Source of the DNA: Eutreptiella sp. 'Long Island Sound 2002'
Lineage: Eukaryota; Protista; Euglenida
Length of the DNA stretch: 64,000 nucleotides
Direction: 5' to 3'
NCBI GenBank assembly: GCA_964036045.1
Contig: OZ038378.1
Location: 178,064,001-178,128,000 of the forward strand
Of the stretch, positions 10,706 through 52,100 are shown one piece after another (position 1 is the first letter of the stretch; every line of letters starts with the position of its first letter). Position numbers and translations under genes: made by a program. The notes below the pieces were generated by a model. The model searched no databases, had not been told where the DNA came from, and saw nothing but the letters and a program-made list of their open reading frames with translations.

Positions 10706-10789
10706 CTGCGGGGGGCACAGAGGCGGGGGCAGTGCAGCCGTCAGGCCGTTGCATGAGGACCCCCCCCCTCTGGGGGCGGGGGGGAGGGA

Positions 10790-10915
10790 CCTGATTCGGG
10801 TGAACTAAGCGAAGGTGCAGGTAGATCCTTCGGTACACGTGCCCTGTGTAACACAGGCAGCTCCCAAGAGCAACGGGATTGCCACCGCTCAAAGGGGCCA
10901 CAACACTTCGACGAG
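10790..10915 (+). repeat. ~130-bp dispersed repeat, copy 1 (copy 2 at ~15925-16045)
   Basis: Shared blocks such as gagc/taagcgaaggtgcag, ccttcggta, ccctgt.taacacag and ctcccaagagc occur in the same order and orientation in introns 3 and 2. Confidence 0.75.
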
Positions 10916-11861: not shown

Positions 11862-12017
11862 CTGGTCCAATGCCTTCTGCTCGCCGCCTGCCGTCCAGCG
11901 GCACCCGTTGCGGAACTCCTGCCGCATGGAGCTGTGGGCCACCAGCAGCACGTCCAGCCGCACCACGTCCGGCACCGCCAGGCCCTGCAGCTCGGCATTC
12001 GTGTGGCACACGCGCAC
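11862..12017 (-). CDS. F-box/SNF2 helicase, exon 3
   Basis: VRVCHTNAELQGLAVPDVVRLDVLLVAHSSMRQE...KALDQ fits the 'DVVlttY' region between motifs Ia and II. Acceptor cctgcag|GTG; donor CAG|gtctcg. Confidence 0.85.
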
Positions 12018-12043
12018 CTGCAGGGGCACAAAGCAGGGGCCAT

Positions 12044-12261
12044 CAAGGGATGGTTTGGAAGGGGGGGGGGGGGGGGGTAGCCCCCCCTCCAGGGTACCCA
12101 GCCTCTGCCCAGCCACTGTCTCCCTGACGGCAAATGCCCGCTTCAATGGCATTGGTAACCGACAGTAACCAACCCCACACCGCTTTGGCAACCTCCTCCA
12201 ACCCCCTGCTAACCGCTGCTGGGGCCGCCTCTGAGGTTCCTTCCCTTCTAATGCATCCCTG
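12044..12261. mobile_element. hAT-type MITE family A, copy 1
   Basis: Homologous to 17994-18206 and ends in aatgcatccctg. Flanked by a near-identical 8-bp direct repeat (ggggccat/ggggtcat). Confidence 0.75.
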
Positions 12262-12429
12262 GGGGTCATCGGGGGGCACAAGACTAAGGGAAAGAGCACG
12301 CGGGGGCTTGCGAGAAGGCGCACAGGCGATGCACCGTCGACCACATACTGGGCACATGCGGCACATGCGGCACGTGCGGCACATGCGGCACGACGAGGGC
12401 ACCCCCCCCGCCAGGGTGGTCCATAGGCA

Positions 12430-13662
12430 TGTATACGCGCGCGTATATTATACGTCACAGTATACGCGCTTATACGCGTGTATACGCGCGCGTATACTAT
12501 ACGTCACAGATATACACGCGCGTATATTATACCTGTATACATATATACACGTATACACATATACACACCTACATAGACACATGCGTATATATATATACAT
12601 ATGTATATACACACACACATACATGCAAATGGGTTACAATATACGCGCGCGTATAATATGTGTGTGTATATATTATACGCGCACGTATAATACACACGCG
12701 TATATATTGTGCGCGCGCGTATAATATATACGCGTGCGTGTAATATATACGCGCACGTATAATATATAACTCTTCACATATATACACACACATGCATACA
12801 CAAGTAGACGCGGCCTGCTAATTGTAGACACAGTCAGCATGTGGTAGACGCGAAGTGCCAATATTTGGGAAGGGGGCCAAAGGCCCCCTTCCCCACAAAC
12901 GGTCCGATTCCAGCGTTTACCCATGTCCCCGGGCAAGGTGGTTTGTAGTCTGTAGACACAGTGCACCACAAGTAGACGCAGCCTGCTAATTGTAGACACT
13001 GTCGGCATGTTGTAGACGCGAAGTGCCAACATTTGGGAAGGGGGCCGAAGGCCTCCGTCCCCACAAACGGTCCGATTCTAGCGTTTACCCGTGCACCCGG
13101 GCAAGGTGGTCTGTAGTCTGCAGACGTGGTCTGCCCGAAGTAGACGCGGCCTGCTAATTGTAGACACTGTCGGCATGTTGTAGACGCAAAGTGCCAATAT
13201 TTGTCAAGGGTGCGCGCCTCTATTACACACACGCGTTTATCATACCTCTATACAAATAGACACACGTACACATACATACACACCTGCACACGTACCTACT
13301 TACATAAAGATACACACACACACACACAGACACACACATATATATATCCATGCATCGGATCATACAGGCGCGTATATTATACGCGCACGTATAATATATA
13401 CGCGCGTATAATATATATGCGTGTATAATATGCGCGCGCGTTTATACACACATATACACGCGCGTTTATACGCACATATACACGCGCGTGTACACCCATG
13501 TATACGTGCGCGTATATACACACGTATACGCGCGCGTATATACCCATCTATACGCGCGCGTATATTCGTATGTATACGCGCGCGGATAAAATATATGTCA
13601 CAGTATACGCACTTATACGCGTGTATACGCGCGCGTATACTATACGTCACAGATATACGCGC
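12430..13662. repeat. Composite satellite: alternating purine-pyrimidine blocks (12430-12800, 13210-13662) around 2.4 copies of a 168-bp unit (12801-13205)
   Basis: The TATACGCGCGCGTATA-type blocks share a ~70-bp direct repeat. The motif aagtagacg recurs with the unit starting at 12801, 12969 and 13137 (period 168). Confidence 0.9.
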
Positions 13663-13665
13663 ATA

Positions 13666-14330
13666 GGGGGAATGTTTGCCCAGCGCGCGCCCGGCACGCT
13701 ACTTTCCTATTAACTATCCCAACTTCAGCTCTAGATTTACCCTCTCATGGAGAAGCCCCCCAAGTAGACCACGTTGCACTGCACACCTTCCCTACAAAGC
13801 ACGTTGCATAATAAAGCAATATCTATGAATTCAGCAACTCCAACTGTCCAACTGTCATCTGTGTTGTACTTAACAAACAACATTGCTCCCACAAGTGTGG
13901 GTGTCTATACAGTCAGTACAATAGTGCTCCTTACACTCATCACAAACTGCGACGGTGGAGCGCTTCTGACAACACAACACACACACTTCTGCGACATCCT
14001 CTACCTCATCTTGCGTGCCACAACCGAGCAAACAGCTGCTCAATGTGTGCCCTATACCACCCATGCACGTCATTGTAAGATTGTTGGCGGGCTGTCAAAG
14101 TGCCATTCTTTCTTCCAATGAGAGGCACAATGACATGAATCCAGCCTTGAGAAGCACCATCATGGCCCCCAACTTCGAAGTCAAAGAAATCATCTCGGGT
14201 ACGAGAAGGCCCATACCCATCCCAAATCAAAACATCTGCTGATGTCCCGGGGGCCAAGGGGCAAATCCATAAAATGTTGCCCAACGTATCAACGGCAACA
14301 GTCCACCGGTAGGGCACGGGTCACAAAAGA
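13666..14330 (-). mobile_element. PIF/Harbinger-like DDE transposon remnant, in intron 2
   Basis: VAVDTLGNILWICPLAPGTSADVLIW...HDGASQG...YNDVHGWYRAHIEQLF (DDE_Tnp_4-like). The G-rich end gggggaatgtttgccc is shared with 17596 and 21477. Confidence 0.8.
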
Positions 14331-14724
14331 TTCCCGGCACGCGCCCGGTGCGCTAATGTTCCCGCATTCGCGCGCTTATAAGTGCGCATTGATCGTCTTC
14401 CCCCCGCGCGCCCCTTCTTCGTGATCCTCCTCCTGTGGGAGGGGAGGAGGTCTCGTCTGGTCTAGTGTGCCTTGCGGTATCGCGGCGTGCCCCGTGGCTC
14501 GTCCCTGACGGTCCCCTGGCTAAGGGCTCGGGTTGGGCGGCCCGCTGGCGGCGACACTGGGCCAGCTGGTCTCCCTGGGAGGGGGGGGGGGGGGCAGCGT
14601 TTCCCCAGGGGCTGTGCTGAGTGCTGTGCTGTGCGTGTCTGCTGGAAAGCGTCCCTTGCACAAGGCGGGCACTGGTCAGCGGCAGCCTTGATGTTCGGCG
14701 ATGTGGGAGGGGAGGGGGGTTGAC

Positions 14725-14953
14725 CAGGTCACGGCTTAAGGTTAACGGGGCGGGGGGGGGGGGGGCTGAATGGCAGCCAGGGCTCCTCCACCTGACCCAG
14801 CCACCCACCCACCCACCCACCCACATCAGAAAACTTTTCCTCCGGAAAAAAGTGAAATTATCAAAGGGGCCCAAAATTGGAGTTCGATTTTAGGTACACA
14901 AACTGACCCCCCCCCCCACCCGCAGTATAGGTCACGGTCGCCACTAAGGCCTG
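14725..14953. mobile_element. hAT-type MITE family B copy (partial third copy ~11190-11300)
   Basis: Ends cagg...cctg. Internal block ggggccc.aaattggag..gattttaggtaca is shared with 16864-17085. Flanked by a ggttgac direct repeat. Confidence 0.75.
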
Positions 14954-16248
14954 GGTTGACCCAGTGGGTTTGAAACCTTGAAACCAGGGCACACAAACGA
15001 GCGCAACACAATGGGATCAAATGGTCAAGACCAGCGCTCCGGAGACAGATCGGTATGTTCTGTAGTGACCAGTCCCATGCAATGCCATCGTCATTGGAGT
15101 CCTGGTGCCGCTTGCGGTTGCGAGGGCCTTTTATTTCACCCTTGCCCTTGTCCAGCCATTCTCACGTGCAATCTGGGATGCACTGCAATAATGAAAAATC
15201 GCCCCCCAACAGTGAGACACATCAACAACCTCCAACCACTTGGCATGTGGGTGAGCTCACTAAAGGCTGATCCAAGTACACCATCAGTAGGGCTGAGGGT
15301 GAGCCTTCCCACTTATGACACCAAAACATCCTGCCCAACGGACCCCACCACACGACACATCCCAGCACTTCATATTGCGCCTTTCAGGTTGCCCTCAGGT
15401 AAGCGAGCGCCAGCAACTGGCTCCACGCTTTCCCGACGGTGAGTGCCGCTTCGCGTATTGGCCGGAGCACAATGTTCCGTTTGGGTGGGTTCACCTGAGC
15501 AGCACTGGAAGGTCAAATAAACTTTGCATCCATACTTCCATGAACCCAGCAATGCCCAGGGACTAAAATCTGCCCCTTGGACAGGGCCTGACCTCCACAC
15601 AAAAAAAAGCTCCTCCCCACTGCGCTGCGCGCACGGGGGGGGGGGGGGGTATTCAGCACACTTGCACTGGCCCTGACATCCCCCACACACACCCTGGTCA
15701 AGCAAACGACCATCCCTAAGCCGGAGCCTGCCCAACCAAAAACAAAAAAAACACACACACCAAGAGGGGACGCCCCCTGTGTGACATTCCGTCGGGTTGC
15801 AGTTTCTTTACGGGGCCCTGGACAGCCACGCGTTCTTCCCTTCGCGTGCTGCGTCGGGTCAATGCTTTCTGACGGCCGCTGCGGCCTGTGTTCCTTGTGG
15901 CGTACACCCCCCTTCGTGGAGTACGGGGGCTGAGACCTCATTCAGGTGAGCTGAGCGAAGGTGCAGTCGGGACCTTCGGTAGACGAACCCTGTTTAACAC
16001 AGCCACCTCCCAAGAGCTACTGGATTGCAACCACTCAAAGGCACGGAGTACAGAGGGGTTGGGGGGGGCTAACACCGGGAGGGGACACAGGCCAAAGCAC
16101 ATCGGGACACAGGCAGCACACACTGGTGCACATACTGGCGTACACACAGGCAGACAGGGGGGCGTGGCAGGACTCAGTGGCCTGGCCATGACTGAGGCCG
16201 GGGCCGTTGCGGAGCTCTGCAGGGCTCACGGCAGCGGTGTGCAAGTGG

Positions 16249-16440
16249 CAGGGAAATATTAGAAAGGGGGGGGGGCTCTGGGACCCAACAAATTGGGTAT
16301 CAAACATGGCCCGGCAAAATTTTCTGTATTGTAAATTTCGTTTTTTCCCACTATGGTCACTTTGGTCCGGAGGGGGGGGGGTCCAGGGGGGGGGGGTACC
16401 CCCCATGCTACGGTGTACGGCCATTCTAATACTCCCCCGG
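16249..16440. mobile_element. MITE-like element family C
   Basis: Imperfect terminal inverted repeat cagggaaatattagaa ... ttctaatactccccc. Confidence 0.5.
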
Positions 16441-16493
16441 GGTGCGGGTATCCGTGGGGTGTGCCGCACAAACAGCGGCACAACGCAGCGCAC

Positions 16494-16760
16494 CTGCAAT
16501 GTGTCTCTGTGCGTGTGCTTGTTGATCTCCTCAATCCACTGATTGATCAACAGCTTTGGTACAATGATCAGCGTCGTCTTGGACGTCCAGAGCCGATGAT
16601 CGGTGGGGGGGCCACCCGCACGCGGCGCGACATCGCGGCGAAGCTCGTCGCGCGCGTCCGCGACGTAGTACGCAACCGCCGGCAGCATCGAGTCATCCCA
16701 AAGCTCCTGCGCGATGTTGGGCACCGCGCTCCAAGTGCCACGCGTCTGCAGCATCAGCGC
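16494..16760 (-). CDS. F-box/SNF2 helicase, exon 2: motif Ia
   Basis: TTLIIVPKLLINQWIEEINKH. Acceptor ccgcag|GCG; donor CAG|gtgcgc. Confidence 0.92.
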
Positions 16761-16863
16761 CTGCGGAGAGCACGGACACAGCGGGGCACGCATGGGGCTG
16801 ATGCGTGCGCGTGTGCTGGCGTCTCACCAATCGCAGAGGGCGGATCTCTGCCAGCCCCGTCGA

Positions 16864-27519: not shown

Positions 27520-30500
27520 GCCTTGGGGTGAGGGGTCCTCTAGCGCTGGATTCCCCGTGCGGGATCCCTGGTATGGGGATTGGGTACAATGGGTAGGTTG
27601 GGCCAGCACAGAGGGCAGAAGGGTGGTGAATGCGGCAAATAAATACCCAAACCCCGATGCTTTGGGTGTCTTGATGCCTGTGTGTAACCACCAGTTGGGC
27701 CCAACCTTGTTTACTCACCATCACTCTTTGCCAATTTTCCCGTCCTTCCACCCATGGGGGTGTTGGCCCTTGCTAAGCCACATGATCACATTCATCTTTG
27801 TGTGGACAACGCCACTGCATTTTATCATTTGTCCCGTCAGGGAGGCCGACGATCGGGGCTCAAGGCCCACATCAAGCGGTTCTTCCTGCATTGCTGGGAC
27901 CGAAACATTCATCTTCATTTGGAGTGGGTGCCATCCCAGGCAAACCCTGCCGATATAGTCTCGCGGCGCAGGTTAGACCGGCGCGAAATTTGTTTGCACC
28001 ACCCATTGTTTCATCTCATGCTCCAGATCCACAAGCGAGTTCGTCCCGAGTGGACTTATTTGCAATGCCCCACAACAAATTGTGCCCCAAAATTGTGAGC
28101 CGTTTTCCAACCAGCTCAAACGTCCCAAATATTGGTGGACGCCTTGACGGCGGACCTCCACTGCCTTCGTTGGGCTTAGCTAGCCTTGAGTTCTTTAACA
28201 TTAATGTGATAACGCATGGGGTTTTGCCCATTATAATAGGAATGCACTTGTTGAGAAAATTGCAAATCAACTGCTCCCAACTCTCAATCCGAGGCATCGG
28301 CCGCAATGCAGCGGTTGGGCACGTCACCAAGCATGTGCTGGCCCGACCAACTACTCAAATAAATCATGCACTTGGCACTCTCGGACTTGAGACGCGACGA
28401 CAAGGGTAGGAAGGTGTCAAACCCGATCCGTGCAGATTGCTTGAGCAACTCAAAAGAAGGAGACAAACAAACAGAGACCGCACTTTGCCCAAAACAGACG
28501 AGGCGCTACGAAGAGACAAAGAATCATGAGAAAGCAATTTGCCGGGGTCCTTCTTACAGGAACGACGTTTGTGGTTGGGAACGGTCACCACTCCTTTAAC
28601 AAAGTCCATTAAAATTCCCGGAAATCCAAGCAGCTGACAGGGAGATACACATTTTTTGTGGTGAATGAGAAAGCTAGACAGCTGCAACAACTCTTGCACA
28701 GCTTGAAAGTGGAGCTCACACTGCTGCTGCGTTGGCGCCACGATGAACAAGTCATCAAGGTAAACAAACACCGCGATACCCCGCGCGGGCCAAATATGCA
28801 TCAAAGGCCTCATAAATGACATAAACACTTGAGAGGCTTGATTGAGGCCAAAGGGCATGGCCGAAAACCGCGAAAATTCATCGTTGAGAAAGATGCCAAC
28901 ATATTGTTGAAAATTTTTGGACTATGCAACGTGAAAATAAGCATGCTTCAAATCAACCTTTGCCCCCCCAAAAACCGCGCCTCAAAGCTGGAAAAACAAC
29001 TTGCCAATGGTCCAACTTAAAACGTTGCGTGGGAAGCGATTGCTTGGGGCGCTTAAGGTTCACCACAAAACGCCCCTTGGTTACCACGTCGCCCGAAGGC
29101 AAATGATCGGTTTTTAAGACAATGAACCACGGCACAAAATACAAAATATCGGAGCGGTTGCACCGGACAAGAGCCCCAATGGACTTATACTTGCGTACCA
29201 ACTCAGAAGCAAACTTATGCTCTACGGTATCATGAGGGTGGGGGCATAAAAATAGAACACTGGACACGCATCGAGGCAATGACACCTCCGGAAGCAAGCC
29301 TTTGCTAAGGATATCTTTCGCGCGGCGAGATCCGTGACGGCGCCACCACTCCCAATGTTGAAGTAACTGAAGAGGGAGGGGTGACGGGACCCCGTCATGG
29401 AGGTGCTCGTGGCGTGCTTGGTCCATGCCGACCTGCTCCTTGGGATCTACCTCTCCTAGTGGACGACCGGTTGCGGCCTCCTTTGCCACCTCTGGCACGG
29501 GGACGTGACCCGCGCGGCCGAAACCCGTGATTGGGGTTGGAATTGGAACCCGAATTGGATTGTCCCTTGCCGGATGAAGAATACCGGTCACAATTGCGAT
29601 TCATGTTCCTTAAAAGAAGGAGACATCATATTGATACCTTGCGCTTGAGCAAGGCCCTCTTTAGAAAACAAACCAGTGCGCACCGGCACCGCGTCCGGAA
29701 TGGACTTGGATTTGTCCCGAATGGACTTGGATTTGCGGTACTCATTTATACGGTTTGACAAATCAATGGCACAAGTGAAAATGCGCTCTAAAAGTTCACT
29801 TCTAGAGAGATCACACGGAGGAGACTCGCGAGAAAACATAGACAAATCAAGCACGCCGGTCAAACATGCAATGTGCAACGCTGACGTTTCCCCTGCTCCA
29901 TGCACCTTCTCAATTTGTGCATTGGCATCCTTACAATAATCATTGACGGACACCTCGAGTGGAATGTCCTTGACAAAAGGCAAATCTTTAGTAAGTTTGG
30001 ACCTATCATACGGATCCAACGCCACGGACAAATGTTTTCACATGTGGGCTAAAAGAGGAGAAAGTTCAAAAGGTTGTTCCACCCAAGGCAAAGGAAAATC
30101 CTCGGGATCCTCGTTCTCACCCAAAGAATGCTTTGTTAATGCATCACACAAGGCCCACACTGCATCCATCGCATCACCTGCTGGAGCTTTGGGGATAGAA
30201 TTAATGCGCCAAAACAAAGCAAGGCCAACAAGCACACCATCCCAATAAACATCGAATGAAATGGCCAATAGTCCTACTTTAGTGAAATCATGGATAAGCC
30301 GGGACAAGTTCCCTTGACCGTAACCAGCTCCTGACCAATGAGCACCCTTGTTAATAATCTCCGCATGGAACTCTTCAGGTGCCAAGGTGGCATATTGCAC
30401 CAAATTCTCCATAAACCATCGCCAGGGTCCGTAGCGCACAGGGACTGCCAGGTAGTAACCAAAACACAACGAACGGCCAAATCCATGGTATTTACAGATA

Positions 30501-37700: not shown

Positions 37701-37801
37701 CGAAGCCTCGAAGTCCATGCTGTACCGGGGGGAAGGCGCGGCTTCCCCCTCCCATTGCCACCAGCTCCAACGATGCCAGCAGTTGCAGGGACGCCTAGCC
37801 T

Positions 37802-37832
37802 TAACCCTACCACTGACCCTCAGGTAGGGTTA
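37802..37832. terminator. Putative 3'-terminal hairpin of the Helitron (rolling-circle termination signal, not a transcription terminator)
   Basis: taaccctacc (37802-37811) and ggtagggtta (37823-37832) are perfect reverse complements with an 11-nt loop. CTAG follows 3 nt later on the minus strand. Confidence 0.6.
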
Positions 37833-40006
37833 GGGTTGAAAGTTAGGGCTTGGTCACCGAGCTGGTGGAACCGGTCTTGGTTTTATAACCCTTTTTAGTG
37901 TCTAGGGTGGACCTACCAGGTTTAGTAGCAGCAGCAAGCAAGCAAGTAGCACGCGCGAAATGGGGGGAAATCAGAACTCCGTCGTGGTGCTTTGGATTTG
38001 GTTGAAATTTTGGTGCATGATACCTATGGGTGTGAAGTACAATCACACAAAGTTTGAGCGAGAAACTCGACGGTGGCGACCGGCAACGGGCTTCGCGGAT
38101 AGGGCACCCAGGTTTCAAAATCTGTCAAAAATGACTAGAAAATGCCATTTTTGGGTAGTTACATGTCCTTGTAGGGGGGAATTGGCATGGAAACCAATGT
38201 AGATGTTGAACGAACACCTTTGGTCATTGTCTAGTGGGGTTCACACCCAAGTAGTGGGCCTGATGACCTCTTTTTGGGCCCATTTTTGACACATTTTAGC
38301 CCCTATAAGTTCCCAACCACCCTGCAATTATTTCTTCGCCGCCTGAACTCCGACAACCCTCGCTTAACCCCCCACCCTCGCCGTACCCGAATGTGCATGG
38401 CTTGAGTCCTGTAGCATCTGCCCGCAAAGCCCCTCTTACCTGCTACCGGCCATTGTGGTGGCGGGGGCCATCGCACTCAAGCAAGGCATTAATGAATCAT
38501 CACGTGCCTAACGCATATGAAACGGGATAGCGGTGAAGCGAAAGCCGATTGTACTTTGTTACCTTTGTGTCCTTGGAATGGTTGTGTATTGGTATAACTA
38601 TGTTGCTCATCCTTTTGCACTTGTGGATATCACCTTGTACTAGGTATTTTTTCTTGTTTGAAGTGTAGTGTTTTAGTACAAAAGTGGCTTGTACTACTTG
38701 CTGATACCACGAAACATTTGTGTGAGAATGCAATGGGGGGGGGGGGATGCAAATACGATGACCTCTTTTTTTGCCCATTTTAGCCCTTATAAGTTCCCAA
38801 CGATCCCGTAATGCGTGAAACAAGGAACATGCAACACTTGGCAGGCACACAATAGCCAGATAGAGACATCAATTTTTTGGTACAGGTATGTTGCAAGAAG
38901 TACAATGCATTGTGCATATGCACCGGATTGGATGGATGTTTTTTTGGGTTTATTGTGGATGACAAAAAGTTTTGCTCATAACAAGAGAAAGAGGAACGGG
39001 ATCGCGGTGAAGCGAAAGCCGAGCGCAGGCGTCAACACGAAGCTTGAGGAGTACATTCATTCCGAGTGGAGTACGGGGTTAGGTTGCTCGCTTGAAGGTT
39101 AGGATAAACGTGGTTGTCCAACAACCAATGCAACACAACGAATGCCGTAAGCTAAGGGCGACGTGAAACATTCCACTCAAGATGCACGAACTGAATGGGT
39201 CGACTTTGCGTCCTTTTGCTGCAGCACCAACCTTTTGTAATGATATGGCGAAATGGCACAAAGCGAAATTCAAAATACGGTCAAAAAGGTATTGGCCACG
39301 CAGGACATTGCTTGATTGCGGTGAAATGGACAGGCACATTGGAGGTAATTGATGGGATCGCGATGAAGCGAAAGCCATTTGCCAACACAAAAAGAGGGGA
39401 GGGGAATTGGAACTCATGTGGCGGAAACTAATGGGATCGCGGTGAAGCAAAAGCCATTTGCCAAACAAAAAGAGGGGAGGGGACAATGCAATGCACAAGG
39501 CGACACAAGACAAAAAGTGATGTAAATACGGCCCACGGTGATGAGTGTGTATTGAGTGCAATGATAGAATCAATGAGGATAACGAGTATGATGGTGATGA
39601 AGAAAGATGACTACCAACATGTGATACGAAAGAAAGGAATACAGGTTGCCTTAATGCAACCGGTGGCAGACAAGGAAGTAAAGTTCAATGATAGTAACAA
39701 CAAATGCATAGCAAAGGAGGTAGGTTAGTAGCATTGATAGTGTCACAAACATCATTGGGAATCGATGGGATCGCGGTGAAGCGAAAACCAACACTACCTT
39801 GTGACATACAAAGAAATGAACGATGGGCTAGCAACCAAGGAGCGAAAGAAGCAGAAACCACTTATGTGGTTATAATGTACAACAAAAAAGAGTGCATGAC
39901 GAGGCAATAAAAAAAAAGGTTGGTAATAAACAGGATCACAATGAAGCGAAAGCCATATACTCAGCTGCACGGTACGATAAGGCTAGGAAGAGGCATTCTT
40001 CTTCAT

Positions 40007-43000
40007 TCATGGCAAGTTGAATTCCGCCTTTACAATCTTCCAAGCATTCAGTAGTAACTGAAATTGCGAGTTTGCCTCTTCATAAGAATCTCCCAATTTA
40101 TTCGTATCTGGGTGAACGCGCATACTACAAGCCATGTACCGAGAACGAGCATTTGCTTTACCAGTGGCACCCAACAAGTCCAAAGCCAATTGTACGTTGT
40201 GGTTGGACAACTTGTCTTCGGTGGAAGCAACAAGGGAGGATGGAAGGTCCGTGATGCATTGTGCTTTTGTTGGAGTCTGGGCGATACTAGGCTCCCGGGG
40301 CGAGGACTTCTTCGTAGATGATTGTGCACGTTTGTTGATTCTACGCTCCTTGGCTTGTGAAGAACTCGATGAACCAGAAGACTCGTGTGATGTATGAGTG
40401 GATGATGACGATGGAGGTGTAGGGTCTCGACCACGATTGCGAGCCCGACTTGAACGACGGTTGTATTCTTGTTTTTCCACAGCTTTTGCACGAACCGGGG
40501 TTTTGGTGATTGCATCTTCTACTGCACGACTCTTTTCTCCTTTGCTACCACCTCTCACGGGCTCTACTTCTTTGCGTCGTTTGGAAGGCGACTTGTCGAA
40601 CGCAATGTCGGAGCCCTCATCATTGAGTGTTAGCCTTGGGTTGCTCTTATGTGAAGGTGGCGCAGGTGCCTTGGACTTTGGACTCAGGGGTTTGTGCACA
40701 TGTTGTTTCCCCTTCTTTTCCAAACGAGCACGCCCCTCATCATCTAGCATCTCTCTTGCAATGTCTGTAGCTGCATCGACGCCGCCTTCACGTTGTTGCT
40801 CAGCACACATCACGTTTTCGATAACCAAGGTTTCAAGCAACAACGTGTGAAGTTGTGTCGTGGTTGAGCCATCAGGGGTGCGTGAATCATCGGGGACACT
40901 ACGATGCTTGCACTTCAGCAGATGCATTCGCAAGTAACCTTGGGCGGTAAAGGAGCGGCCACAACCTTGTGGGCAAGGAAATGACTTCGAGGCCTCGTCA
41001 TCCTTTTTCTTGGGGGGTGGCTTGATAGGGTGGTTGTAATCAATGCCATGCTGCGCATAGAGGTGAACCAAGTGAGCATGTGCCCTATCATAGCCATTCA
41101 AATACGGCATATATTTGACCACCATGACTTTTGGAACCAAACACAACAACCGATGCCTCCAACCATCACCCGATGACCCTTCTTGAAGCCGCAACACGCG
41201 GATATTCTTCCCCTCATGTACTCGGGAAATGCCGACGTATAGGGCATTGTACGTAAGAGCCGGTCGACACTTATGGTCCACACAGAGGATAATTTTCTCC
41301 ATTGATCGGCATTGAATTCCGTGGTACGTACATCCAAAAGTGAGTCGGAAAGGATGAGCAGAAGTCATGATGGCTGCCTTCCCCTTCTTGTTGCGAACAC
41401 TAATGTAGCGATGAACGTCGATCTTGCGTGCCATTGGCATCAAAGGAATAAGAACGGTATGCGCATTGCTCCCCTCCATACGATCAGCGGTCGTGGTGCT
41501 GCGTGGCACTGCAGCAGTCACACAGAATGGTGGTTGCTCGAGGTACATGACTTGGCCCGGTGTTGCATCACGAATCTCATCAGCACGATAGGAGGGCTCG
41601 TTCGGACTTAGAAGGAGGGAATGCAACTTAGCTTGAGTACCATTTGACAGCCCCTTCTCGGGACGCAAATTTGCCGTCAACGAGCAAGGTGCCCCCTGGG
41701 CAAAGAACACGGTCATGTCCTTGACAGCACCATACAAAAACTCGGACGGTTCACCAAAGCGTCGTTCATACTTTTGGTATTGGTAAGCGCCAAGCCACCA
41801 CCGGAACAACCGTGCGCTTTGCATATTGTTGCACCATAACCTAGTTGACAGCATGCACCGTTTTCTGATCTGTACTCACAATTTTTGCTTCCTCCCAACC
41901 CTCGTCCTTGTCCGCGAAGTCCCTCCGGGTGACCTCGTTCAACCGCGAAAAAAACTTCTTTCGAACATCCATACTCTTGGGTGTCCACCGGCGAAAGGCC
42001 GTGACAGCCCGAGCATGTTCCTGGTCGGTTGCGCGGTGCTGCTTGGTAAGGCACACTTCGCGAAACAACCCAAAAAGCTCACGCCCCTCCTGATCCACAA
42101 GGTCTTGTCCTCCTTGTTGACACTTGACACCCCCATACAAAGGAAGCTGTGCCACGGGTTCAAGTTGAACAAAATCACCCATGAGCAAGATGCACAATCC
42201 TCCAAATGGTGCTTCATAACACTGGGTGACCTCGCGCAAACGTGAATCAATCTCCCTCAACATTCCACAGCCGACCATTGAAACCTCGTCCACCACTAGC
42301 ACCTGACATCCAAGAAAAAAACGACACAAGCGATCCAACGTTGCTCGTTTATTCTCCACATTGGCACGCACTTCGTCGGCATCTTATACTTTGAGACCCA
42401 TGCCATGGTGACAAGGGGAACCATTGTTCAGATTGCTCGCAGCAATACCGGACGGAGCCACGTACTTCACAACATTGTTTCCGTATTGTCCGCACATTCG
42501 CTTTAAAATTTCACGAGCCATCCAACTTTTCCCGGTTCCTCCACTAGCTTGCACAAACAGCAGGGGTGCCACCGGTCTGCAAGACGGGTCTAAGCGTGCA
42601 TCCAAATGGACGTAATCAATGATGGTTTGCATGTAGGATTGCTTCTTGTGATGGGTCACCTTTGTCAATTGTGGGACTTGATGCGGCAGGCACAAAGGAA
42701 GAGGAATCCCCAAGAGCTTCATCCTCACGCTTGATAGCATCGGCAATGCGTTGCGCATGTGCATAAATGTCATCACCGCTCTCGTATTGTCCATGGTCAT
42801 TAAGGTCATGCACGAAGCTGATATCATAGGATGGCGCACTGCTGGTTTCGGGATGGTGCGGAAGAAACCCTCGAAGAGATGCACAAATGCCATCGAACTC
42901 TTTTGCATTGTCTTCCTGTTTTTCCTCTGCCTGTGCACGATTTATGGCATCCTGAATATCCTCAACCGCTTTGACAAAGCGCGTATTTTGGACGTCCTTT

Positions 43001-46000
43001 TTGAGGTCGTTCACCTCTTGCATCTCCTTCTCAAAATCAAAATGCACATCCAAAGCATGGCGGACTCCCCAAAGCTTGCCATTTCGCTTCCGCACTTGAT
43101 CGAAAATAGTTTTTTGGAGACGTTCACATTGACCATGACGAATAATCCTCGGCTGCGCTCCAAATAGCTAGCATGCTCGCTTTGACAATGGGTAGCTCAT
43201 TCAACATATGCACTCCACATCAATGGGCAGCTCATTCAACATATGCACTCCACGTCAGCTTTGGAGGGCATTCTATATCCCAGGGAACAAAAGCGCACAT
43301 CACAAATGTAGCCCAATTCTTCTTGAGCTTCACATTTCCATCGTCACCATGATAGACGGGTAGTTTCTTTCCAGCAAAGATTGGGCACCGTGATTGAGAT
43401 ACCAAGTATTGCACATAATCATCCTCGCACAAAATGTGACGCGGATGAAAATCGAAGCTTGCATTTTCCGGACGACCATCGTCACCTCCTTGTGATGGTG
43501 TGGCTCGTGCACGTTGGTGTTCCACCTTAATTAAACAAGTGTATTCCAACGCACACAACAACGTAGGCGTGTTCCACGACAAGCATAATGCAACGCCGGC
43601 GATACAGCAATCTGTTGTATGGTGTCACCACTGCCAATCGTGTAGAGTTGGGAGTGACAAGGTGCTTCAAGATCCCGTTGCATGGCGCTCATGGTCAACT
43701 CATTAAGCTCACCAGAAACAAACGATGCTTCTTGGGCTTCAAACTCGGCAACGTCGGACGCAATTGACCCTGCCTCAGATTCACCATCTTCTTCATCATT
43801 GTCTAATAGCTCTTCCGCCAAGCTATCGTCATGAAGCTCATTGGTATTGGCTTCATTGTTGGCAACGACATTTGATTCGTTACTATCGGTGCCATCCTCC
43901 TCGTACTCGTCATCACTGCACATAGTGGGATCATCTGGGACAAGGCCTTCGACGTGGGAGAACATAGTTGGCAATGCAGCAATGAGCCCCCAAGGATGGA
44001 ATACGGTAAACTTGTGAGAACAATGCCAAGATGGGTAACCCAAGAGAGATATGGCCGCCATCTGTACACTGAACTCCACTTTCTTGTCCAAGGAATTGAT
44101 AATGCGCTTGAGGAGGAAGGTTGTTTCGTGCTTCGTGTTGCTTGCACCTCTTTCCATTTCCTTGACTTCCCGAGATACCTGCCGAATAATACTCATTACG
44201 TTTGCCACTTGCACCGGATTCTTGCCTGAATACCTCAATGGTGTAACGATTTCCGGTTCCTTTGCGCGCAACGAATAAGTATGGCCGTGTCTCACTGTAG
44301 TACTCCCCCACCGCACGTGGCAGTGCAAATCGACACCCACATTTTCCTCCGGGAGGCTTGCCGCAACTGGAGATCAAACATCGATGAATGTACAAATTGC
44401 CAAATACTTCATCGCTAAATAGCTCTATAATTTTGGCTGCCGCCCGCGGGTCATCGGGTAACTCTCCAAGTAGCTGTTGCTTCTCCAGCATGTGTGGTGC
44501 TTTCACTCCTTCTCTGGTGCGGTGTTCCCATGCATCATGCAATTCAGCATCCAATGAAGCACAAATCTGCTGGTCCAATACCACGGCCACGGCACGAATT
44601 AGATCACCGTTCCCCCGCACCATATCCAAGAGCCAAGGTGGTTTTCCACCCCAAAACAGCCCGTGAAAATGCAAACTTCCACGACCTTGACACTCGTAGC
44701 AAGTGCAACACGCAACACAAGTACCAATAGGCCTTTCCTGCGCGCACAAACAGGGCGATCCTTCCGCGTTACACTTGCCGAAGGTAATCCAAGAAGTACT
44801 TCCAAAAATGCGCGCACTTGGCGTTCAAATATGCGTGCCGCAGCCACCAGATTCTTTGCCAAAGATGCGAAACGCTGCGACACACCGGGTAGTGGCACCT
44901 GTGCACTAGAGCCTCCAATGGACAAATAAAGGACCAACTGATTATCAATGTCATTGTGAGCCACGGTGTAAAACAACGTTGCCATTCCAAAGAACAACAA
45001 TAGGCTGTTCATCTTGCCCATCACTGCATATCGCTCGGAGGTACTAAAGGGCACGGCAGCATGACAACTTCTCAATAACGGCAAGAATTGCCCAACAAGC
45101 CGTTTTGCCGTAGCTCCGCGTGGATTAGCATGCACCTCTGCCAAATCCTTATGTCCGACTATTCATTGCCTTCTCAAAGGCTTTGAGTTTTTCCGGATTG
45201 GAATACACGGAGTCCGACACGGTGCGTAGCGCAGTGTGCCGAAACTTTTGATTGAATAGTACAAGGCAAAAATCACGATTTTCTGCAATGCGGTTGTCAT
45301 GCTGTAGCAGCAAATGACAAGTATCATCCACACCAAGGCCATAGCAGCGCGTTATGCCAACCCCAAACATGAAGAGTGTTGGGAATGACAAATGAAGCAA
45401 GCGATCATTCGCTGTGAACTCATTCACCGCGCGTGCCTCTCGGCCTACAACGGTGTTTCGCTTATCAGCCAACAGCTCCTTGATGGACTGCAAAACTTGG
45501 GTGTAGTCATCTCCATCGCGGCCCACCAAGCTTCCATCTGAGGACATCACGGCATCCAAAACTGCAGCTTCCTGAGTACGCTCGGGATTGGCGATGTCAG
45601 CACCCGACATCCGTTCGCTAGCCACCACGTCCGGGTGCTCGCCAACGGATATGGAATCGAACAAATTGTTCATGTACTCGGAAACCTCTACGGGCTCGGT
45701 CTCATCAATAACAATGTTTGCATACAACGGGTTTACCGCCTTCAACAGGCGTAACCACTGCACCAAGGCGTCCCAACGCGGTTGAAAGACCCGTTCAACT
45801 TGCTGCCTTGTCTTGGGGTTGCGACGAACAGCATCCAACTCCGTTTGCTTTCCCACAAATATGACCTTCGTACCCGTCAACGCCTTGACATCAGGTAATC
45901 GAGATGCAAGAACCTCGGGTCCCTCATGTGGAATGGATATGGTGTGTCCTCGAATACCCCATAGTGAAGCCGCACCACTAGTGGTGGACACAAGCTTCAC

Positions 46001-48472
46001 GGTATTCACGGTGGTTCGAACTCGAGCGACCATGCGTTCCTCCATGTCCGTCAATGCAAGTAGATCACCCAAGCGCCCAAAATGCTTGCCTGCCGCAATG
46101 GAATGAGGAGGCATGCATGGCCGCTTCTTCATGCTAAAAAGCTGTCTATGACAACTTACGCAAATGAGCACAACTTCTTCGTCCACCAACTCTGGAATGA
46201 GCCAGAACAGTTGGCCACCATGTTCATGTACACAAAAGTACTTGCGAAATTGCGCCGTTGTGTTCCGATACCGAGTGGCATCATGCGCGCTCAGCTCCAA
46301 CAGCTTCAAATCCTCCAAAGAAACTTCTTTGACTTGATGAAAGTCATGTATACCACAACAACCACAACTTTTTAAATCTTCACAACGCCCAACCTTTGCA
46401 AACCATTCTCGTGCTAGCGACACCATTTCCTCGGGTGTCACCTTTTCATTCTCAATCTCTTTCACAAGTTTTGCCACTAACTCTGCATCACCAAGCTCGT
46501 CCTCCTCAAATGGTGGAAAACGATCATGGCCACCTTGCTCCCAGAAGCTTCGAACCGTGGATGATAAGGACGTTCCAACCAAGTTGCCCTTGAACTCGTC
46601 AGCGCAGGGTTTTTGTTTGCTGCACAACAACGCATCCTCCTCATCATCCAAATGATACGCTCCACCCTCACGCTCCTTGTGGTTCATCCACGGATACGTA
46701 ACGGCCGTGGAAGCGGTACCTACAATCTTCTGTCTTGCATAATTCAGCGCACGTGACGAACGGCCTGTTTCTCCTGCACGCTGCTTGCCCTCCTTGCTTC
46801 CTGCCTCTCCGGCACGCCGCTTGTCCTCCTTGCTTCCTGTCTCTCCTGCACGCCGCTTGTCTTCCTTGCTTCCGGTCTCTCCTGCACGCCGCTTGTCTTC
46901 CTTGCTTCCTGTCTCTCCTGCACACCGCTTGTCTTCCTTGCTTCCGGTCTCTCCTGCACGCCGCTTGTCTTCCTTGCTACCTCCTTTGCCCCCAGTCTCT
47001 CCTGCACGCCGCGTGTCTTCCTTGCTAGCTCCTTTGCCCCCAATCTCTCCAGCACGCTGCTTGTCTTCCTTGCTACCTCCGTTGCCTCCAGTCTCTACTG
47101 CACGCCGCTTGTCCTCTTTGCTACCTCCTTTGCCCCCAATCTCTCCTGCACGCTGCTTGTCTTCCTTGCTTCCTCCTTTGCCTCCAGTCTCTCCTGCACG
47201 CCGCTAGTACTCTTTGCTACCTCCTTTGCCACCAATCTCTCCTGCACGCTGCTTGTCTTCCTTGCTTCCTGCATCTCCTGCACGCTGCTTGTCTTCCTTG
47301 CTACCTCCTTTGCCCCCAGTCTCTCCTGCACGCCGCTTGTCCTCTTTGCTACCTCCTTTGCCCTCAATCTCTCCAGCACGCCGCTTGTCTTCCTTCCTTC
47401 CAGTCACTCCTGCACGACGCTTGTTTTCCGTGCACCTTGCTACGGTAAGGTCAATGGATGCGGGTTCACCGCATTGACTTTCATGTTGATGCCGCGCAAG
47501 ACTACGTTCATCCTTGTACGAACGCCCACAAGAGCTACACGTGAAGTCTTTGTTCTGTGACCCACACGAACGTGCCTCAGGACCACGCTCACAAAAATGA
47601 CGATACTCCCGGTCAAACGCATGCCCACAACCCGCACACTGCCAACACATTGCCACACCCGTAGAACGAATTTTGTCAGCATTGTTCACCACATCCCCGT
47701 CACTTACAAAGCCAAGCCATTCACATTTATACTTTTGCGCAGCCACCAAACACTCAGCCTTTCCAATCTTGCTTGGCCTTCCTTTGCCGGAGCCATTCCC
47801 ATTCAAAGCATGCATAGTATGGTTCAAAGAAGAAGCCACAACAGCCGCCCACCCCACCATGGTAGCCGCCAAAGCAACCGCAAGAATGATCAGTAAAAGC
47901 CCAGACATCAAGACAGCCCTCCACCGATGGCGCCGCGTTAATGCTCTGCTCCTTGTTCTCCGTCTACACCGCCAATGCGCAAGCCGTACATGATGGGGAA
48001 GGCGCTTTTGCGAATGGCAATGCCCACATCCACAGAAGAAGAAAATGCCATCGCTTTGCAACCATTCCCTTGTTGTTCCTAGCACAAGGCAACGGAAGGA
48101 GCTTCTACGAGAAGGCTTTCTCCGCCATCGATGCGCACCACAACCACACGCCGGAGTGCAAACAGGGCGACGCCCCCCATAAATATGAACTTTGGCATAA
48201 CCCTGGGCACTTAAAACATCCACTGGCCGAAGAAGGACGACATCTACAACCAGCAGAAGCCAAAGAAGACCTCGTAAGTGACGAAACACCACATCGGCAC
48301 TGTAAATCATATGGTAAATGATAACGAGACCGCGGTGAAGCAGAAGCCGTTGACAAAGCAATAACAAAATCCTCTGAACAAGAACATGCATGCAATGCAA
48401 ATGTGACACACAACAGACACAAGCCACACAAAACACACAGCAACTACCTTGCAATATTTTGTCACGCGACAA
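40007..48472 (-). pseudogene. RepHel polyprotein pseudogene: zinc fingers - charged repeats - DUF6570-like - HUH Rep - PIF1 helicase - zinc finger - J-domain
   Basis: CGCC..CVSC..IAAG..LTDMEERMVAR..GHTI; WLRLLKAVNPLY; SFPTLF; ECQGRGSLHFHG (HUH); HRC..SC..CRF; GGTGKS, APSGIAA, DEVSM, PFGG, GDFVQLEPV, YVGISRV; HPD. In-frame stops at 47204 and 42384; frameshifts near 45155, 44724, 44235, 43565, 43230, 42640 and 41845. Confidence 0.92.
46755..47415 (-). repeat. In-frame coding minisatellite of 36- and 48-bp units, KEDKRRAGETG(GKGG)S
   Basis: Units are multiples of 3 and keep ORFs 47204-48472 and 45149-46687 in one frame. Confidence 0.9.
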
Positions 48473-48729
48473 CCTCCCTTATACTCATGTTGGCGCCGCA
48501 GTACCGCGACCAAACGTAATGCGGCCGCTGTCAATCAATGACATACATGCAACCATCATTAACCTACTCTCAATCAATGACATACATGCAACCATCGTTA
48601 ACCTACCCGACGCACGGAAGCAAATATCTGGTGGAGAGGGGAACACACAATGACACAAGGCAGACTTTTTAACTTTTTTATCTACCTATCACGCACAAGA
48701 GCAAATGTTGGAACTCATGCAGTCGAAAA

Positions 48730-49140
48730 TGAATGGGATCGCGGTGAAGCGAAAGCCATTTGCAAACACAAAAGGGGGAAGGGGAATACAAAACAGACAT
48801 TGACATTCATGCGATAATGGGATCGCGGTGAAGCGAAAGCCATTTGCAAACACGTAAAGGGGGAGGGGAATACAAAACAAACAGTGACAATCATGCAATA
48901 ATGGGATCGCGGTGAAGCGAAAGCCATTTGCAAACGCATAAAGGGGGAGGGGAATACAAAACAAACAGTGACATTCGTGCAATAATGGGATCGCGGCGAA
49001 GCGAAAGCCATTTGCAAACTCAAAAGGAGAGAGGAGAAGACAAAACAGACGTTGACATTCATGCAATAATGGGATCGCGGTGAAGCGAAAGCCATTTGCC
49101 AATGCAAAAAGAGGGGAGGGGAATACAGAACACACAACTA
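48730..49140. repeat. 84-bp tandem repeat x5 in the Helitron 5' region
   Basis: gggatcgcgg starts at 48735, 48819, 48903, 48987 and 49071. Confidence 0.95.
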
Positions 49141-52100
49141 CATGCAATTGCAACCCCCAATTGACTTTCCTCCACCCTAGTGCGTACAAAAGCATAGGCA
49201 CTACCCCACCAGCTCGGTCCCCATATTCAGTCTTGATTTTGGGTTAGGATGCACAGGTCATGGTTAGAGGGAGGAGGTTAGGGAGCCTGTGATGAAGCAA
49301 CGCGTGGCCCTAGGGGCATGTAATCTGCCATGCCCCCCCCCCCTATTGCCCCTTCCAAACCCCCCCCAAATCACCATCGTTACCCCCCCCCCCCCGCAGG
49401 TGACTTTGCAAGTGGACATCCTAGGGCCCAAAAGCCCCCGTGGGGGAGAGTTCCCCCACCGGCGGTCCGGGGTGTTTGCTTGGATGCACTTGGCCAGCAG
49501 GTGGGCTCTGTTGGCACAACCGACCAAGGGAAAGGAAAGGGAAGGAGTGGTGAGAGGCCGATGGACACCACGAAGGAGTGGTGAGAGGCCGATGGACACC
49601 ACGGCCTATGGAGGGAAAGGCCAAGGGAAAGGAAAGGGAAGTAGAGAGGGAAGGTTAGGGCAAGGAGGAAGAGGAAGGTCACAGGGTGCCCCCATGTGTC
49701 ACGATGTGCCTCAGCCCATGAACAGCGTTGCCAGTCTACCAAGCCCAGCAACCCACCCACCCACCCAAAAGAGCTGACACCTCCCCCTGGGGGTACCTGC
49801 ACTTTTCCCAAAATCGGGAGAAAATCAGACAGACCCACCTACCCATCCTCAGACCCACCCACCCACCCCACGGTATAGTATCAATCAGTCACTAAGCAAT
49901 GGCTTGCTTCACACCCAAGAAATGGCCCACAGCCACACCTGGCGGCCTTCACTACTGACAGGCATCCCTCAGCACCACTCGCACTGTGCCCAGCGAATGC
50001 TTTCGGGGAGCGGGTAGCAGACAGCATCATCACACCGCATACCAAGTGGTAATACATCTTGTCACATGCATCTGCAAATTTACGGTGGCACTTTCGTAGC
50101 TCTTCCCTGCACACATGCACACAGCATACAAACACATCCCGCCCTCTGACGGCAGTCAGGGGAAGCATTGGGCACAAAACTGCGGTCACAAAAAAGACAG
50201 TAAGAATAGGTCGCCGTGCTTCGACATAGCCGTGCTAGAGAACGGGGAGGGTGGGGGGGCAGGTCGCGAGGTATGATGCTGGATCATGGTGGGCACAAGA
50301 GACTGTAACACAGCTGCCCAACATGCGGCCATGCGTGCACATTTCTACACAGCCCTCGCACCCCTCACGTTTGTCATCTGCTCATTTGCAGCGTTGTGCT
50401 TTTTGCGTGGATGTGCAGCCCCACAGAGGATGTGCATAGAGCGGGCCTAGAACCAGATGCTGCATCTGACACCACAAAACCAGACATGCTGTACAACATG
50501 ATCCCCTCCTGGTGTTTGCTAGGGGAAATCGTTGCACTGTCTGAGCACTGCGTGCTGCTTTTAGGCTGTACTCCCCCGCAAAAGCCCGAAGACCAACCCC
50601 TTCCAAAAGCTCTCAAACCCAGGCCACCCCCACAAGCCCAGCTCTGCACAGTCGTTTCCTAACCCAAATCAATGTTATACCCAAATCGTAACTGTAGCTC
50701 CAGGCCTGGCTGCTCCCCCACTGCCAACCCTGTGTACCCATGCATCCCTCTGGCGACCAAGAAACTCACAGTTGGCAATGCTTTCCCTGCTGCTCCTCCT
50801 TGTCGCCAAACACGCCTCAGCAGAAAGAGCAGAAAAATTCAACGGTGTGAGCCTTGTGTGTTGATCTGACAATGCTGGCGACTGCTGTAGACTTCACGGT
50901 GACTGCCAATGTCAATACCTGAACCCCAACCACACTCTGAGCGCGCATGTGGGCGCGTCGCCCAATGACAAGGGGTGCATACCCCCAATTTGGGTCAGGG
51001 GCACTGGGGGAAGTGGTCGTCATCACTGCTGTTCGGACACTTGTGTACAACTCCTGTGAGTGACGTGAGTAACCCTCACCAGAATGCCGACCCCCCAAAC
51101 ACGGGCCGCAAAAATACTGCCCTTTTTGGATCTCCCTGCGAAGCCCACTGTAAGATGGCGCATCCCTGGGAGACTGAAAAGGTGGTGGTCCAGCCCTCCC
51201 TCCCTCGTGTCACTATGGCAGTCCGTATACCACCAGGTCCCGCACAACTCTATATCCATTTTTTCAGAGGAGCTGCACTCTGCTGCGCAGGCCTTGCTCC
51301 ACTCCTCCAGCTGGTAATCGAATCGTCCAACCCTCAACAACCCTCAGAATTGGCAGCCTTTCCCCCAACACTCAGGACCCTTGCAAAGCTCTACCGCTTC
51401 ATGCTTCAGTGCAGCAAGACTACCAGTAAGCATGAAGGAAACCACCCCTCAACTGAACGCAGATGTAGCCATTCGCCGGTGAGTGCTTATGTGTGGTATA
51501 AAAAATGCAAAAAACAAAACAAACAAACAACAACAAGTAATTTTCGGCAGCAGGTGTGGTGTGCACCCAGGGACTTGCCCCAAAAAGCAACGACAACATG
51601 CGCTAGAACAATGCAGCAGGCGGAAACACCAAGCATTAGCACCACCCTGCAGGGTGTCAACCTCGACCTCCATTCTATTTGTGCATGTCAGTTCCAAGAG
51701 TTTGCGGTTGAGGAGAAAACAAAAGCCATAAGGCCACCAGCCCCTTCTCTAGCTCAAGCTCTCATTCTCCCTCTCCCTCAGGTGCTCATATCCGTCGTTT
51801 TCGGGTGACAAGTAGTTTGTCCGGTTGAGCAAGAAAATGTTCCAATCAAGCTCATTCAAATGTTTAAAAAAACTATGCGCATCGATACTTAACACCCACG
51901 TGACATTGTAGGAGACCCTGTTTGTGCAGGAAACAAGATGTTACCCACTTTCGCGAACAAGAGACAGTAATGTTTCGGTGCAAATAAGTGAAAAAGTGGG
52001 GAGTAGCTTTTGTGACAAGGAGACCGTAATGTTCAGTTGCAAAATGAGTGAAAAAGTGGGGAGTAGCAAAAAAGGGCGGAGGATGGAGAGAGCTCTAATA

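Follow-up and report, generated by a model that had tools for sequence, protein, structure and literature searches.

Does the transposase of a Helitron-like element in the euglenid Eutreptiella sp. 'Long Island Sound 2002' truly end in a J-domain, and, if it does, is that domain a working part of the enzyme or cargo that it merely carries? The question is raised by a stretch of 64,000 nucleotides (assembly GCA_964036045.1, contig OZ038378.1, positions 178,064,001 to 178,128,000; hereafter the window, to whose numbering coordinates refer unless another locus is named), in which a preliminary description, made from the letters alone, had pointed to a RepHel helicase open reading frame (ORF) that closes with a J-domain bearing an intact HPD motif. 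The first half of the question can be answered plainly: the tail of the window copy is a real J-domain, with the HPD motif and the helix II/III hairpin. As to the second half, the RepHel transposase has the J-domain as an integral C-terminal part, in frame and kept by selection: one ORF of the window holds both it and the helicase motifs V/VI, and one ORF of another copy (protein P0053) holds both it and PIF1. The window copy itself is a dead, decayed pseudogene.

The tail, about 65 residues long, closes an uninterrupted ORF of 615 codons at 40007-41854 on the minus strand, the strand of every element feature given below. The peptide quoted in the preliminary description is encoded exactly at 40010-40210 and forms, with the stop codon at 40009-40007, the last 68 codons of this ORF; its HPD, read from the codons CAC CCA GAT, lies at 40114-40106, where it had been placed. 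The J-domain proper occupies 40010..40198 and consists of helix I, helix II, the HPD loop and a long helix III, as read from Pfam, a PDB profile search, AlphaFold and Foldseek. Taken alone, the window tail matches the Pfam DnaJ family (PF00226) with E=5.8e-5 and 23.5 bits, under the curated cut-off of 27.8 bits. The same holds for the tails of its subfamily, termed A (22.7-23.5 bits and E 5.8e-5 to 1e-4, window copy included), and for a tail of subfamily B (P0034, 26.8 bits); scores above the cut-off are reached by tails of subfamilies C (locus L003, 41.7 and 37.1 bits) and D (P0039, 30.9 bits). Since these sister-subfamily tails are homologous to that of the window (40% identity and E=3e-15 between the window tail and a family C tail) and pass the cut-off, the window tail is identified as a J-domain.

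Profile and structure comparisons agree with this assignment. Specifically, an alignment of nine tails (A1) was used for a profile search against the PDB and for AlphaFold2. The profile search returned 35 sequences at E<=1, and 35 of the 35 are J-domain proteins, with DNAJB8 (E=3.2e-6), Plasmodium type II Hsp40 and E. coli DnaJ at the top. Run on an 86-residue piece, AlphaFold2 gave a mean predicted local distance difference test score (pLDDT) of 90.7 and a model in which an extra short helix (residues 10-19) is followed by helix I (25-32), helix II (37-51) and a long helix III (62-83), the HPD at residues 52-54 falling into the predicted loop between helices II and III. All of the 14 best Foldseek matches in the PDB are J-domains, including auxilin, DnaJ bound to DnaK (5nro_B, root-mean-square deviation (rmsd) 2.4 Å) and the murine polyomavirus T antigen (1faf, rmsd 2.7 Å over 70 columns, 26% identity), and against BFVD, viral DnaJ proteins and polyomavirus small t/T antigens make up most of the top matches; in the two databases the template modeling (TM) scores are 0.5-0.6, with rmsd values of 1.7-3 Å over 53-70 residues. 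An origin of the domain from a T antigen was considered and rejected, as no T antigen is found among the PDB profile matches of A1, the best of which are cellular DNAJB and DnaJ proteins; in this search the sequence is closest to cellular DNAJA/DNAJB types, not to T antigen.

Is the tail peculiar to this one copy? The European Nucleotide Archive (ENA) assembly ERZ25074135 holds the window (in contig ctg10843) and all other J-tail copies, which amount to at least 23 tails in four subfamilies whose tails are 36-64% identical (at least 11 complete tails in A, three in B, eight in C and one in D). Subfamily A, to which the window belongs (88-96% identical), comprises P0002, P0033 and 13 ORFs that fall into one 90% cluster; HPD is kept in 9 of its 11 complete tails, the others having HPE or HPY, and one tail is frameshifted. 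The three tails of subfamily B (57-64% identical) carry HPD in P0034, HLD in P0035 and QPD in P0036. Among the eight tails of subfamily C (tails 37-43%, RepHel ~63% identical), five retain HPD, and HVD, HRD or HPN is found in the remainder. The single tail of subfamily D (P0039 at locus L006, 36% identical) has HPD. The suspicion that an HPD tripeptide had arisen by chance in some helical tail, or that a transposon had inserted into a host J-protein gene, could draw on the sub-threshold Pfam match of the window copy alone, but copies on many separate contigs have this tail in the same place, sister tails pass Pfam and every PDB profile match is a J-domain; on these grounds, we regard an artifact of this kind as refuted for all practical purposes.

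Subfamily D differs in its surroundings. At L006 (8579-10330), the J-tail P0039 shares its reading frame with an upstream ORF of Cys-rich CxxC repeats, from which a single stop separates it, and has the same 'KAQC..DLP' motif ahead of the J-domain; neither a RepHel nor Helitron ends are found nearby. The locus may stand for the lineage of the donor gene, or else be another mobile element.

We then turned to selection, using Nei-Gojobori counts on tblastn-guided codon pairs to obtain the ratio of non-synonymous to synonymous substitution rates (dN/dS), a comparison that the preliminary description had proposed for the J-domain among copies and whose outcome supports it. Between locus L001 (subfamily A) and locus L005 (subfamily B), the 63 codons of the J core give a dN/dS of 0.31 (proportions of non-synonymous and synonymous differences, pN and pS, of 0.19 and 0.45; P=0.0014), next to 0.17 for the helicase and 0.21 for the Rep domain of the same pair. 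Between L001 and L003 (subfamily C), the J core has a pN of 0.36 and a pS of 0.78 (P=3.5e-6), with synonymous sites saturated. Within family A, the linker in front of the tail shows values of 0.97-0.99, and the J core values of 0.09 and 0.40 on small counts. The J core is under purifying selection like Rep and Hel, and the linker evolves neutrally within the family. The rank order of identities is the same for J-domain and RepHel (A-B above A-C), and the pattern fits a J-domain that was acquired once, before subfamilies A, B and C parted, and was then passed down vertically in at least three RepHel subfamilies, selection having kept it throughout their divergence.

These data bear directly on the view that the tail has no function and merely rides along after a single capture of a host J-protein exon. 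Helitrons do often capture host gene fragments, according to the HELIANO survey text, and the J-tail of L006, behind a Cys-rich repeat protein and without a RepHel, could belong to the donor lineage. Because the J core shows purifying selection, however, this view is disfavored, and we hold it to be very improbable: the tail is in frame with RepHel and is retained across subfamilies with saturated synonymous sites, non-synonymous change is clearly below synonymous change, and drift is seen in the adjacent linker but not in the J core. The preliminary description had likewise weighed a one-off capture, and this is not what the copies show, as the tail is carried by other family A copies and by three further diverged subfamilies.

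How firmly is the J-domain joined to the helicase? The preliminary description had the tail in frame with the PIF1 motifs and no stop between them, which in this copy stands for the helicase C-terminal part with the superfamily 1 (SF1) motifs V/VI and fails for the PIF1 part with Walker A/B. The former part lies at 41030..41773 (TYHGIQC.., LTYNALYVGISR), in frame with the tail, and was recognized by BLASTP: residues 28-275 of the ORF are 45% identical to residues 561-830 of P0011 and 41% identical to residues 1096-1350 of P0007, two RepHel proteins from outside this genome, and the matched stretches are the region after Pfam PIF1 in these proteins, including SF1 motif V/VI signatures. Plain phmmer with the first 288 ORF residues against the PDB gave no match, the helicase nature having come from the comparison with P0007 and P0011. 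Behind this part follow a C2HC/C2H2-like zinc finger at 40907..40981 (ORF residues 292-316; weak Pfam zf-C2HC_2 and zf-C2H2 matches, E 0.006-0.009), which is also present after the helicase of P0007 and P0011, a Ser/Lys/Pro-rich linker at 40241..40906 with basic clusters resembling nuclear localization signals (e.g., SKRRKE) and a dN/dS of about 1 within the family, and a short conserved helix directly ahead of the J-domain (40211..40240; ..ITDLPSSLVAS..), similar to a motif before the J-domain of L006. The finger and the Ser/Lys-rich linker had both been described correctly.

The N-terminal half of the Pif1-like helicase, with Walker A (GGTGKS) and Walker B (VVDEVS), was located by Pfam at 41841..42938 and is broken by a nonsense codon and frameshifts. 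Pfam PIF1 matches the ORFs 42384-42938 and 41841-42371, and this detectable part is out of frame with the tail, the nonsense codon at 42384-42386 and a frameshift near 41775-41845 lying between them. Relative to L001, the frame of the window changes near 45150, 44740, 43560, 43225, 42640 and 41775-41845, and about 64 codons of Rep, including that of the first catalytic Tyr, are deleted near 44227-44234. Introns were ruled out as the source of these frame changes, as L001 reads all of the positions in one frame.

Other copies complement the window. P0053 (887 residues, locus L007) unites Pfam PIF1 (40.2 bits) and the J tail within one ORF; P0003 (1557 residues) unites an N-terminal C2H2 finger, DUF6570 and Helitron_like_N; and a 1527-residue gene product of L001 holds Pfam PIF1 together with Helitron_like_N. 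The L001 pieces 4421-5284, 5300-9907 and 9926-11368 form one frame that is split by nonsense codons only, the window is open at the positions of the L001 stops, and L001 is unshifted where the window is frameshifted. Taken together, P0053, P0003, L001 and the window show that the gene was ancestrally one ORF, of some 2,900 codons. It encoded one very large protein, of ~2,900 residues as pieced together from complementary copies, in the order N-terminal finger and repeats, DUF6570, HUH Rep (HFH; YVVGY), Pif1 helicase, zinc finger, disordered basic linker and J-domain.

The element that carries this gene is present once within the window, as a decayed autonomous copy of a Helitron-like element of ~11.4 kb at 37852..49236, with its 5' end, in the left terminal sequence (LTS), at 49236 and its 3' end, in the right terminal sequence (RTS), at 37852; these limits come from blastn against L001 and locus L002, where the ends are conserved and the flanks diverge. 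The LTS (TCAAGACTGAATA..GGGACCGAGCTGGTGGGG) lies at 49192..49236 and the RTS (..AAGACCGGTTCCACCAGCTCGGTGACC) at 37852..37880, with degenerate CCCTAA repeats just outside the element. Reverse-complemented, a 13-nucleotide stretch of the LTS matches part of the right end, and this inverted match (ACCGAGCTGGTGG / CCACCAGCTCGGT) joins LTS and RTS. The same ends, with diverging flanks, were found in the window, L001, L002, L007 and L005. Between the 5' end and the ORF lie 4.8 copies of an 84-nucleotide satellite (48732..49136), and 1.7 further units lie in the 3' untranslated part (39340-39486). The coding part begins with the N-terminal region of RepHel (47204..48472), which has a C2H2-type finger and is one ORF with DUF6570 and Rep in P0003. 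Coding tandem repeats with periods of 36, 48 and 132 nucleotides in the N-terminal region (46764..47437) vary in copy number among element copies; they encode a Ser/Lys/Arg-rich unit of 12-16 residues and are expanded to >4.5 kb in a second copy in L002 (16449-21092). An ORF piece with DUF6570 (45149..46687; Pfam, E=4.5e-18) and the Rep domain come next, the latter being an HUH nuclease (Pfam Helitron_like_N) that is spread over two frames (43931..45144), with the HFH motif at 44671-44663. Rep of L001 has HFH at residue 406 and YVVGY, with the two catalytic Tyr, at residues 617-621.

An apurinic/apyrimidinic (AP) endonuclease (Exo_endo_phos) has no Pfam match in any window element ORF piece, nor in P0001, P0003 or P0053. 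Therefore, the element is Helitron2-like and not a Helentron in the strict sense. We file it as a Helitron2-like HLE2 element, a provisional placement made by DUF6570, the inverted repeat of the ends, the missing AP endonuclease, the head-to-tail arrays and an OTU-bearing relative; in the HELIANO survey text, DUF6570 is reported as almost confined to HLE2 elements. With HLE2 elements it shares the Rep(HUH)-Pif1 RepHel, DUF6570 upstream of Rep, short inverted repeats between the ends, occurrence in many copies and in tandem arrays with short non-autonomous derivatives, and a zinc finger after the helicase that is followed by an accessory slot. It differs in having a J-domain as accessory domain, fused in frame at the extreme C-terminal end, and in the unusual length of the protein (~2,900 residues). 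Short non-autonomous elements of ~1.1 kb (L002 13192-14338; L007 1241-2376 and 2381-3531) share both ends with full-length copies and lie head-to-tail with them, forming tandem arrays in which the spacers are only 28-46 nucleotides of CCCTAA-like sequence.

Outside relatives show what else can occupy the accessory slot. P0007, from another metagenome (ERZ12293692) and with a RepHel 38% identical to the present one, ends after the zinc finger, without a J-domain. P0011, the nearest outside relative, a Joint Genome Institute (JGI) metagenome protein (43-45% identical), has PIF1, the zinc finger and then an OTU domain, likewise without a J-domain; its residues 874-1080 span a C2H2 finger and an OTU-like protease domain that scores 23.2 bits, against a cut-off of 23.3. 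That P0011 carries OTU in this place is in line with the remark of the preliminary description on related elements, and the slot after the helicase zinc finger seems, from this comparison, to be a swap site for accessory domains, filled by OTU in P0011 and by linker and J-domain here.

Relatives of the J-domain arrangement itself were sought widely. A phmmer search with the tail against 1.84 billion representative proteins gave eight matches, five of them real and all five from ERZ25074135, and no relative elsewhere; the other three (P0037, P0038 and P0040) were discarded as repeat or coiled-coil artifacts, P0037 having only a weak Phasin_2 match. No relatives were found in JGI metagenome contigs, searched with a J-domain alignment and with an alignment of the helicase C-terminal part, or in an IMG/VR scan. 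In full-text searches of the literature, Helitron came up together with J-domain or DnaJ only by coincidence, and no RepHel-J architecture was found. Across 404 eukaryote genomes, the HELIANO survey counted 20 accessory domains that are stable parts of Helitron-like elements, and its main text names 19 of the 20 (RPA, OTU, EN, STPRs, B3, Ssb-like_OB, 2OG-FeII_Oxy_2, FBA_3, UCH, Peptidase_C48, DUF6570, Herpes_Helicase, Herpes_teg_N, UvrD_C_2, B56, fn3_PAP, DUF3106, HIN and HSP20); DnaJ is not among these 19. A precedent for a chaperone domain is contained in the same list, HSP20 being reported as a stable capture by HLE2 elements. We thus found no earlier report of a J-domain fused to a Helitron RepHel, and it appears to add to the known kinds of accessory domain. 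The preliminary description had set beforehand what would tell against it, namely the lack of a J-domain profile or structure match, other copies without the tail, or an architecture already catalogued, and the outcomes favored it on all three points.

What might a J-domain do at the end of a transposase? J-domains with an HPD motif bind ATP-bound Hsp70 and trigger hydrolysis, upon which Hsp70 captures a nearby substrate. DnaJ and DnaK free DnaB from lambda P and monomerize P1 RepA, and the J-domain of large T antigen is needed for efficient polyomavirus DNA replication. By analogy with these systems, we propose that RepHel, through its J-domain, brings host Hsp70 in cis to itself or to its complex with DNA for remodeling or folding, a reading to which we give a probability of roughly 0.6. 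According to this model, the J-domain would, as all HPD-bearing J-domains studied so far do, dock on host Hsp70-ATP and trigger ATP hydrolysis, so that Hsp70 would clamp onto a nearby substrate, either RepHel alone or RepHel in its nucleoprotein complex. Most probably, Hsp70 would then act on the complex that RepHel and DNA form at the element ends in the course of rolling-circle transposition, either activating it or disassembling and recycling it. A simpler and non-exclusive job would be to aid the folding and survival of a giant multidomain protein of ~2,900 residues.

Several observations weigh against this reading. The J-domain of family A is divergent and stays under the Pfam cut-off; in its helix II, several basic positions are replaced, leaving fewer basic residues than in canonical DnaJ; and helix IV is absent, the protein stopping 7 residues past the helix III core and the model showing one long final helix. 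The Foldseek E-values of 0.3-2 (0.7-2 in the PDB) are not significant alone, as is usual for small helical domains. Every copy examined has stops or frameshifts, and none of those seen is fully intact. An ORF of ~2,900 residues would have exceeded the lengths to which the RepHel search was confined; the search with the tail, in which length was unrestricted, did not list any long RepHel protein. Finally, the J architecture is so far confined to one genome, which suggests that it is dispensable for Helitrons generally. The first of these points could also be read to mean that the tail is a J-like interaction module without Hsp70 action, that is, a plain protein-protein or dimerization domain, as some degenerate J-like domains are. 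The low Pfam scores of family A tails (22.7-23.5 bits), the less basic helix II and the missing helix IV speak in favor of such a module, but the HPD motif, which is the hallmark that modules of this kind lose, is present in most copies seen across the four subfamilies, and the tails of families C and D are canonical by Pfam, so that we consider this explanation unlikely.

A further alternative keeps Hsp70 and changes its target. The J-domain of T antigen also acts on Rb-family/E2F complexes, and the J-domain of the element could, by the same analogy, bring Hsp70 to a host target such as chromatin, cell-cycle or silencing factors and thereby condition the cell for transposition. Only the analogy with polyomavirus T antigen favors this, together with the long disordered linker, which could let the J-domain reach partners, but no recognizable host-target binding motif was found and the linker is neutral within the family, and we judge such a role improbable.

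Recruitment of Hsp70 in cis to RepHel itself can be set beside two groups of known systems. Polyomavirus large T antigen combines an HPD J-domain, an origin-binding domain of the HUH-Rep fold class and a replicative helicase in one polypeptide, as the element does. However, its J-domain is N-terminal and that of RepHel C-terminal, its helicase belongs to SF3 and that of RepHel to SF1B (Pif1-like), Rep is here of the HUH nuclease class and of the active type, and the J-domain is closer to cellular DNAJA/B, with no T antigen in the PDB profile matches. Most likely, the resemblance is a functional analogy reached by convergence and not a homology of architecture. In the lambda O/P-DnaB and P1 RepA systems, a J-protein and Hsp70 activate or disassemble an initiator- or helicase-DNA complex, much as would happen here, with the difference that the J-protein is there a separate host protein acting in trans, whereas the J-domain is here built into the initiator-helicase.

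Another feature of the element concerns its flanks. CCCTAA-like repeats, in a polarity that equals the sense strand of the element, flank every element junction examined (window, L001, three L002 junctions and L007). In the window, degenerate runs of them lie before the LTS (49237-49330) and after the RTS (37760-37851), and corresponding runs are found at L001 1400-1489 and 13744-13780, at L002 13164-13191 and 14339-14384 and at L007 3514-3556. A check of T/T insertion found all junctions inside CCCTAA-like repeats, and the telomere-type repeat near the elements is CCCTAA, not CCCTAAA. The repeats may be either insertion target or cargo. Separately, the scaffold of P0007 (locus L004 in ERZ12293692) ends in 114 nucleotides of (TTAGGG)n (7779-7892), 1.3 kb downstream of the ORF, which suggests that elements of this clade are telomere-adjacent. 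For Paramecium Helitrons, insertion into the C-strand of telomeric repeats has been proposed (BMC Biol 2026, PMC13085455). The two share C-strand telomere-type repeats on both sides of full-length copies, in element sense orientation, and satellites between the ORF and the ends; the Paramecium repeat, however, is CCC(C/A)AA and not CCCTAA, the host is different, and the likeness concerns the layout of flanks and satellites. The Paramecium paper (PMC13085455) mentions no J-domain. It is tempting to speculate that rolling-circle transposition in this lineage depends on Hsp70 that the transposase recruits for itself through its built-in J-domain, and that the same lineage specifically colonizes telomere-type repeats, a combined proposal that we advance tentatively and at less than even odds.

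The contigs in ERZ25074135 are 0.3-3 Mb long at 34-47x coverage. The GC content of the window is 53%, with a moderate CpG depletion (observed/expected ratio of 0.5-0.7) and an excess of TpG and CpA, and it is rich in repeats, with exons rich in GC at third codon positions (GC3). The only host gene recognized is a divergent SNF2/RAD5-like helicase gene at 7364-16823 on the minus strand, with kilobase-long introns; it has SNF2 pieces at 16038-16823 and 10160-10804 and Helicase_C at 7364-8359, and its exon GC3 reaches 0.91. Its best non-self relatives include an MMETSP transcript at 36% identity. Directly downstream of its last exon, the stretch 5840-7360 has a GC content of 77-80% and long open frames in several phases, whose translations are of low complexity (Ala/Pro/Arg/Gly). 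A reverse-transcriptase ORF at 28367-30037 on the minus strand (Pfam RVT_1, E=2.9e-11) marks a retroelement. The Rfam scan of the window gave no match.

To our knowledge, the loading, activation and release of Helitron RepHel on DNA are poorly understood, and we know of no host cofactor that had been tied to these steps by sequence. A selected J-domain at the end of the transposase points to Hsp70 as such a cofactor, and the HPD motif offers a clean handle for testing this. With it, a chaperone-recruiting module joins the accessory domains of Helitrons, beside the reported capture of HSP20. Since the most abundant subfamily stays under the Pfam cut-off, standard domain surveys of transposons would miss the J-domain. 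If the proposed readings are true, a eukaryotic transposon would have converged on the solution of T antigen, uniting a helicase with a J-domain and an origin-binding domain of the HUH fold in a single protein, and telomere-inserting Helitrons would extend beyond ciliates.

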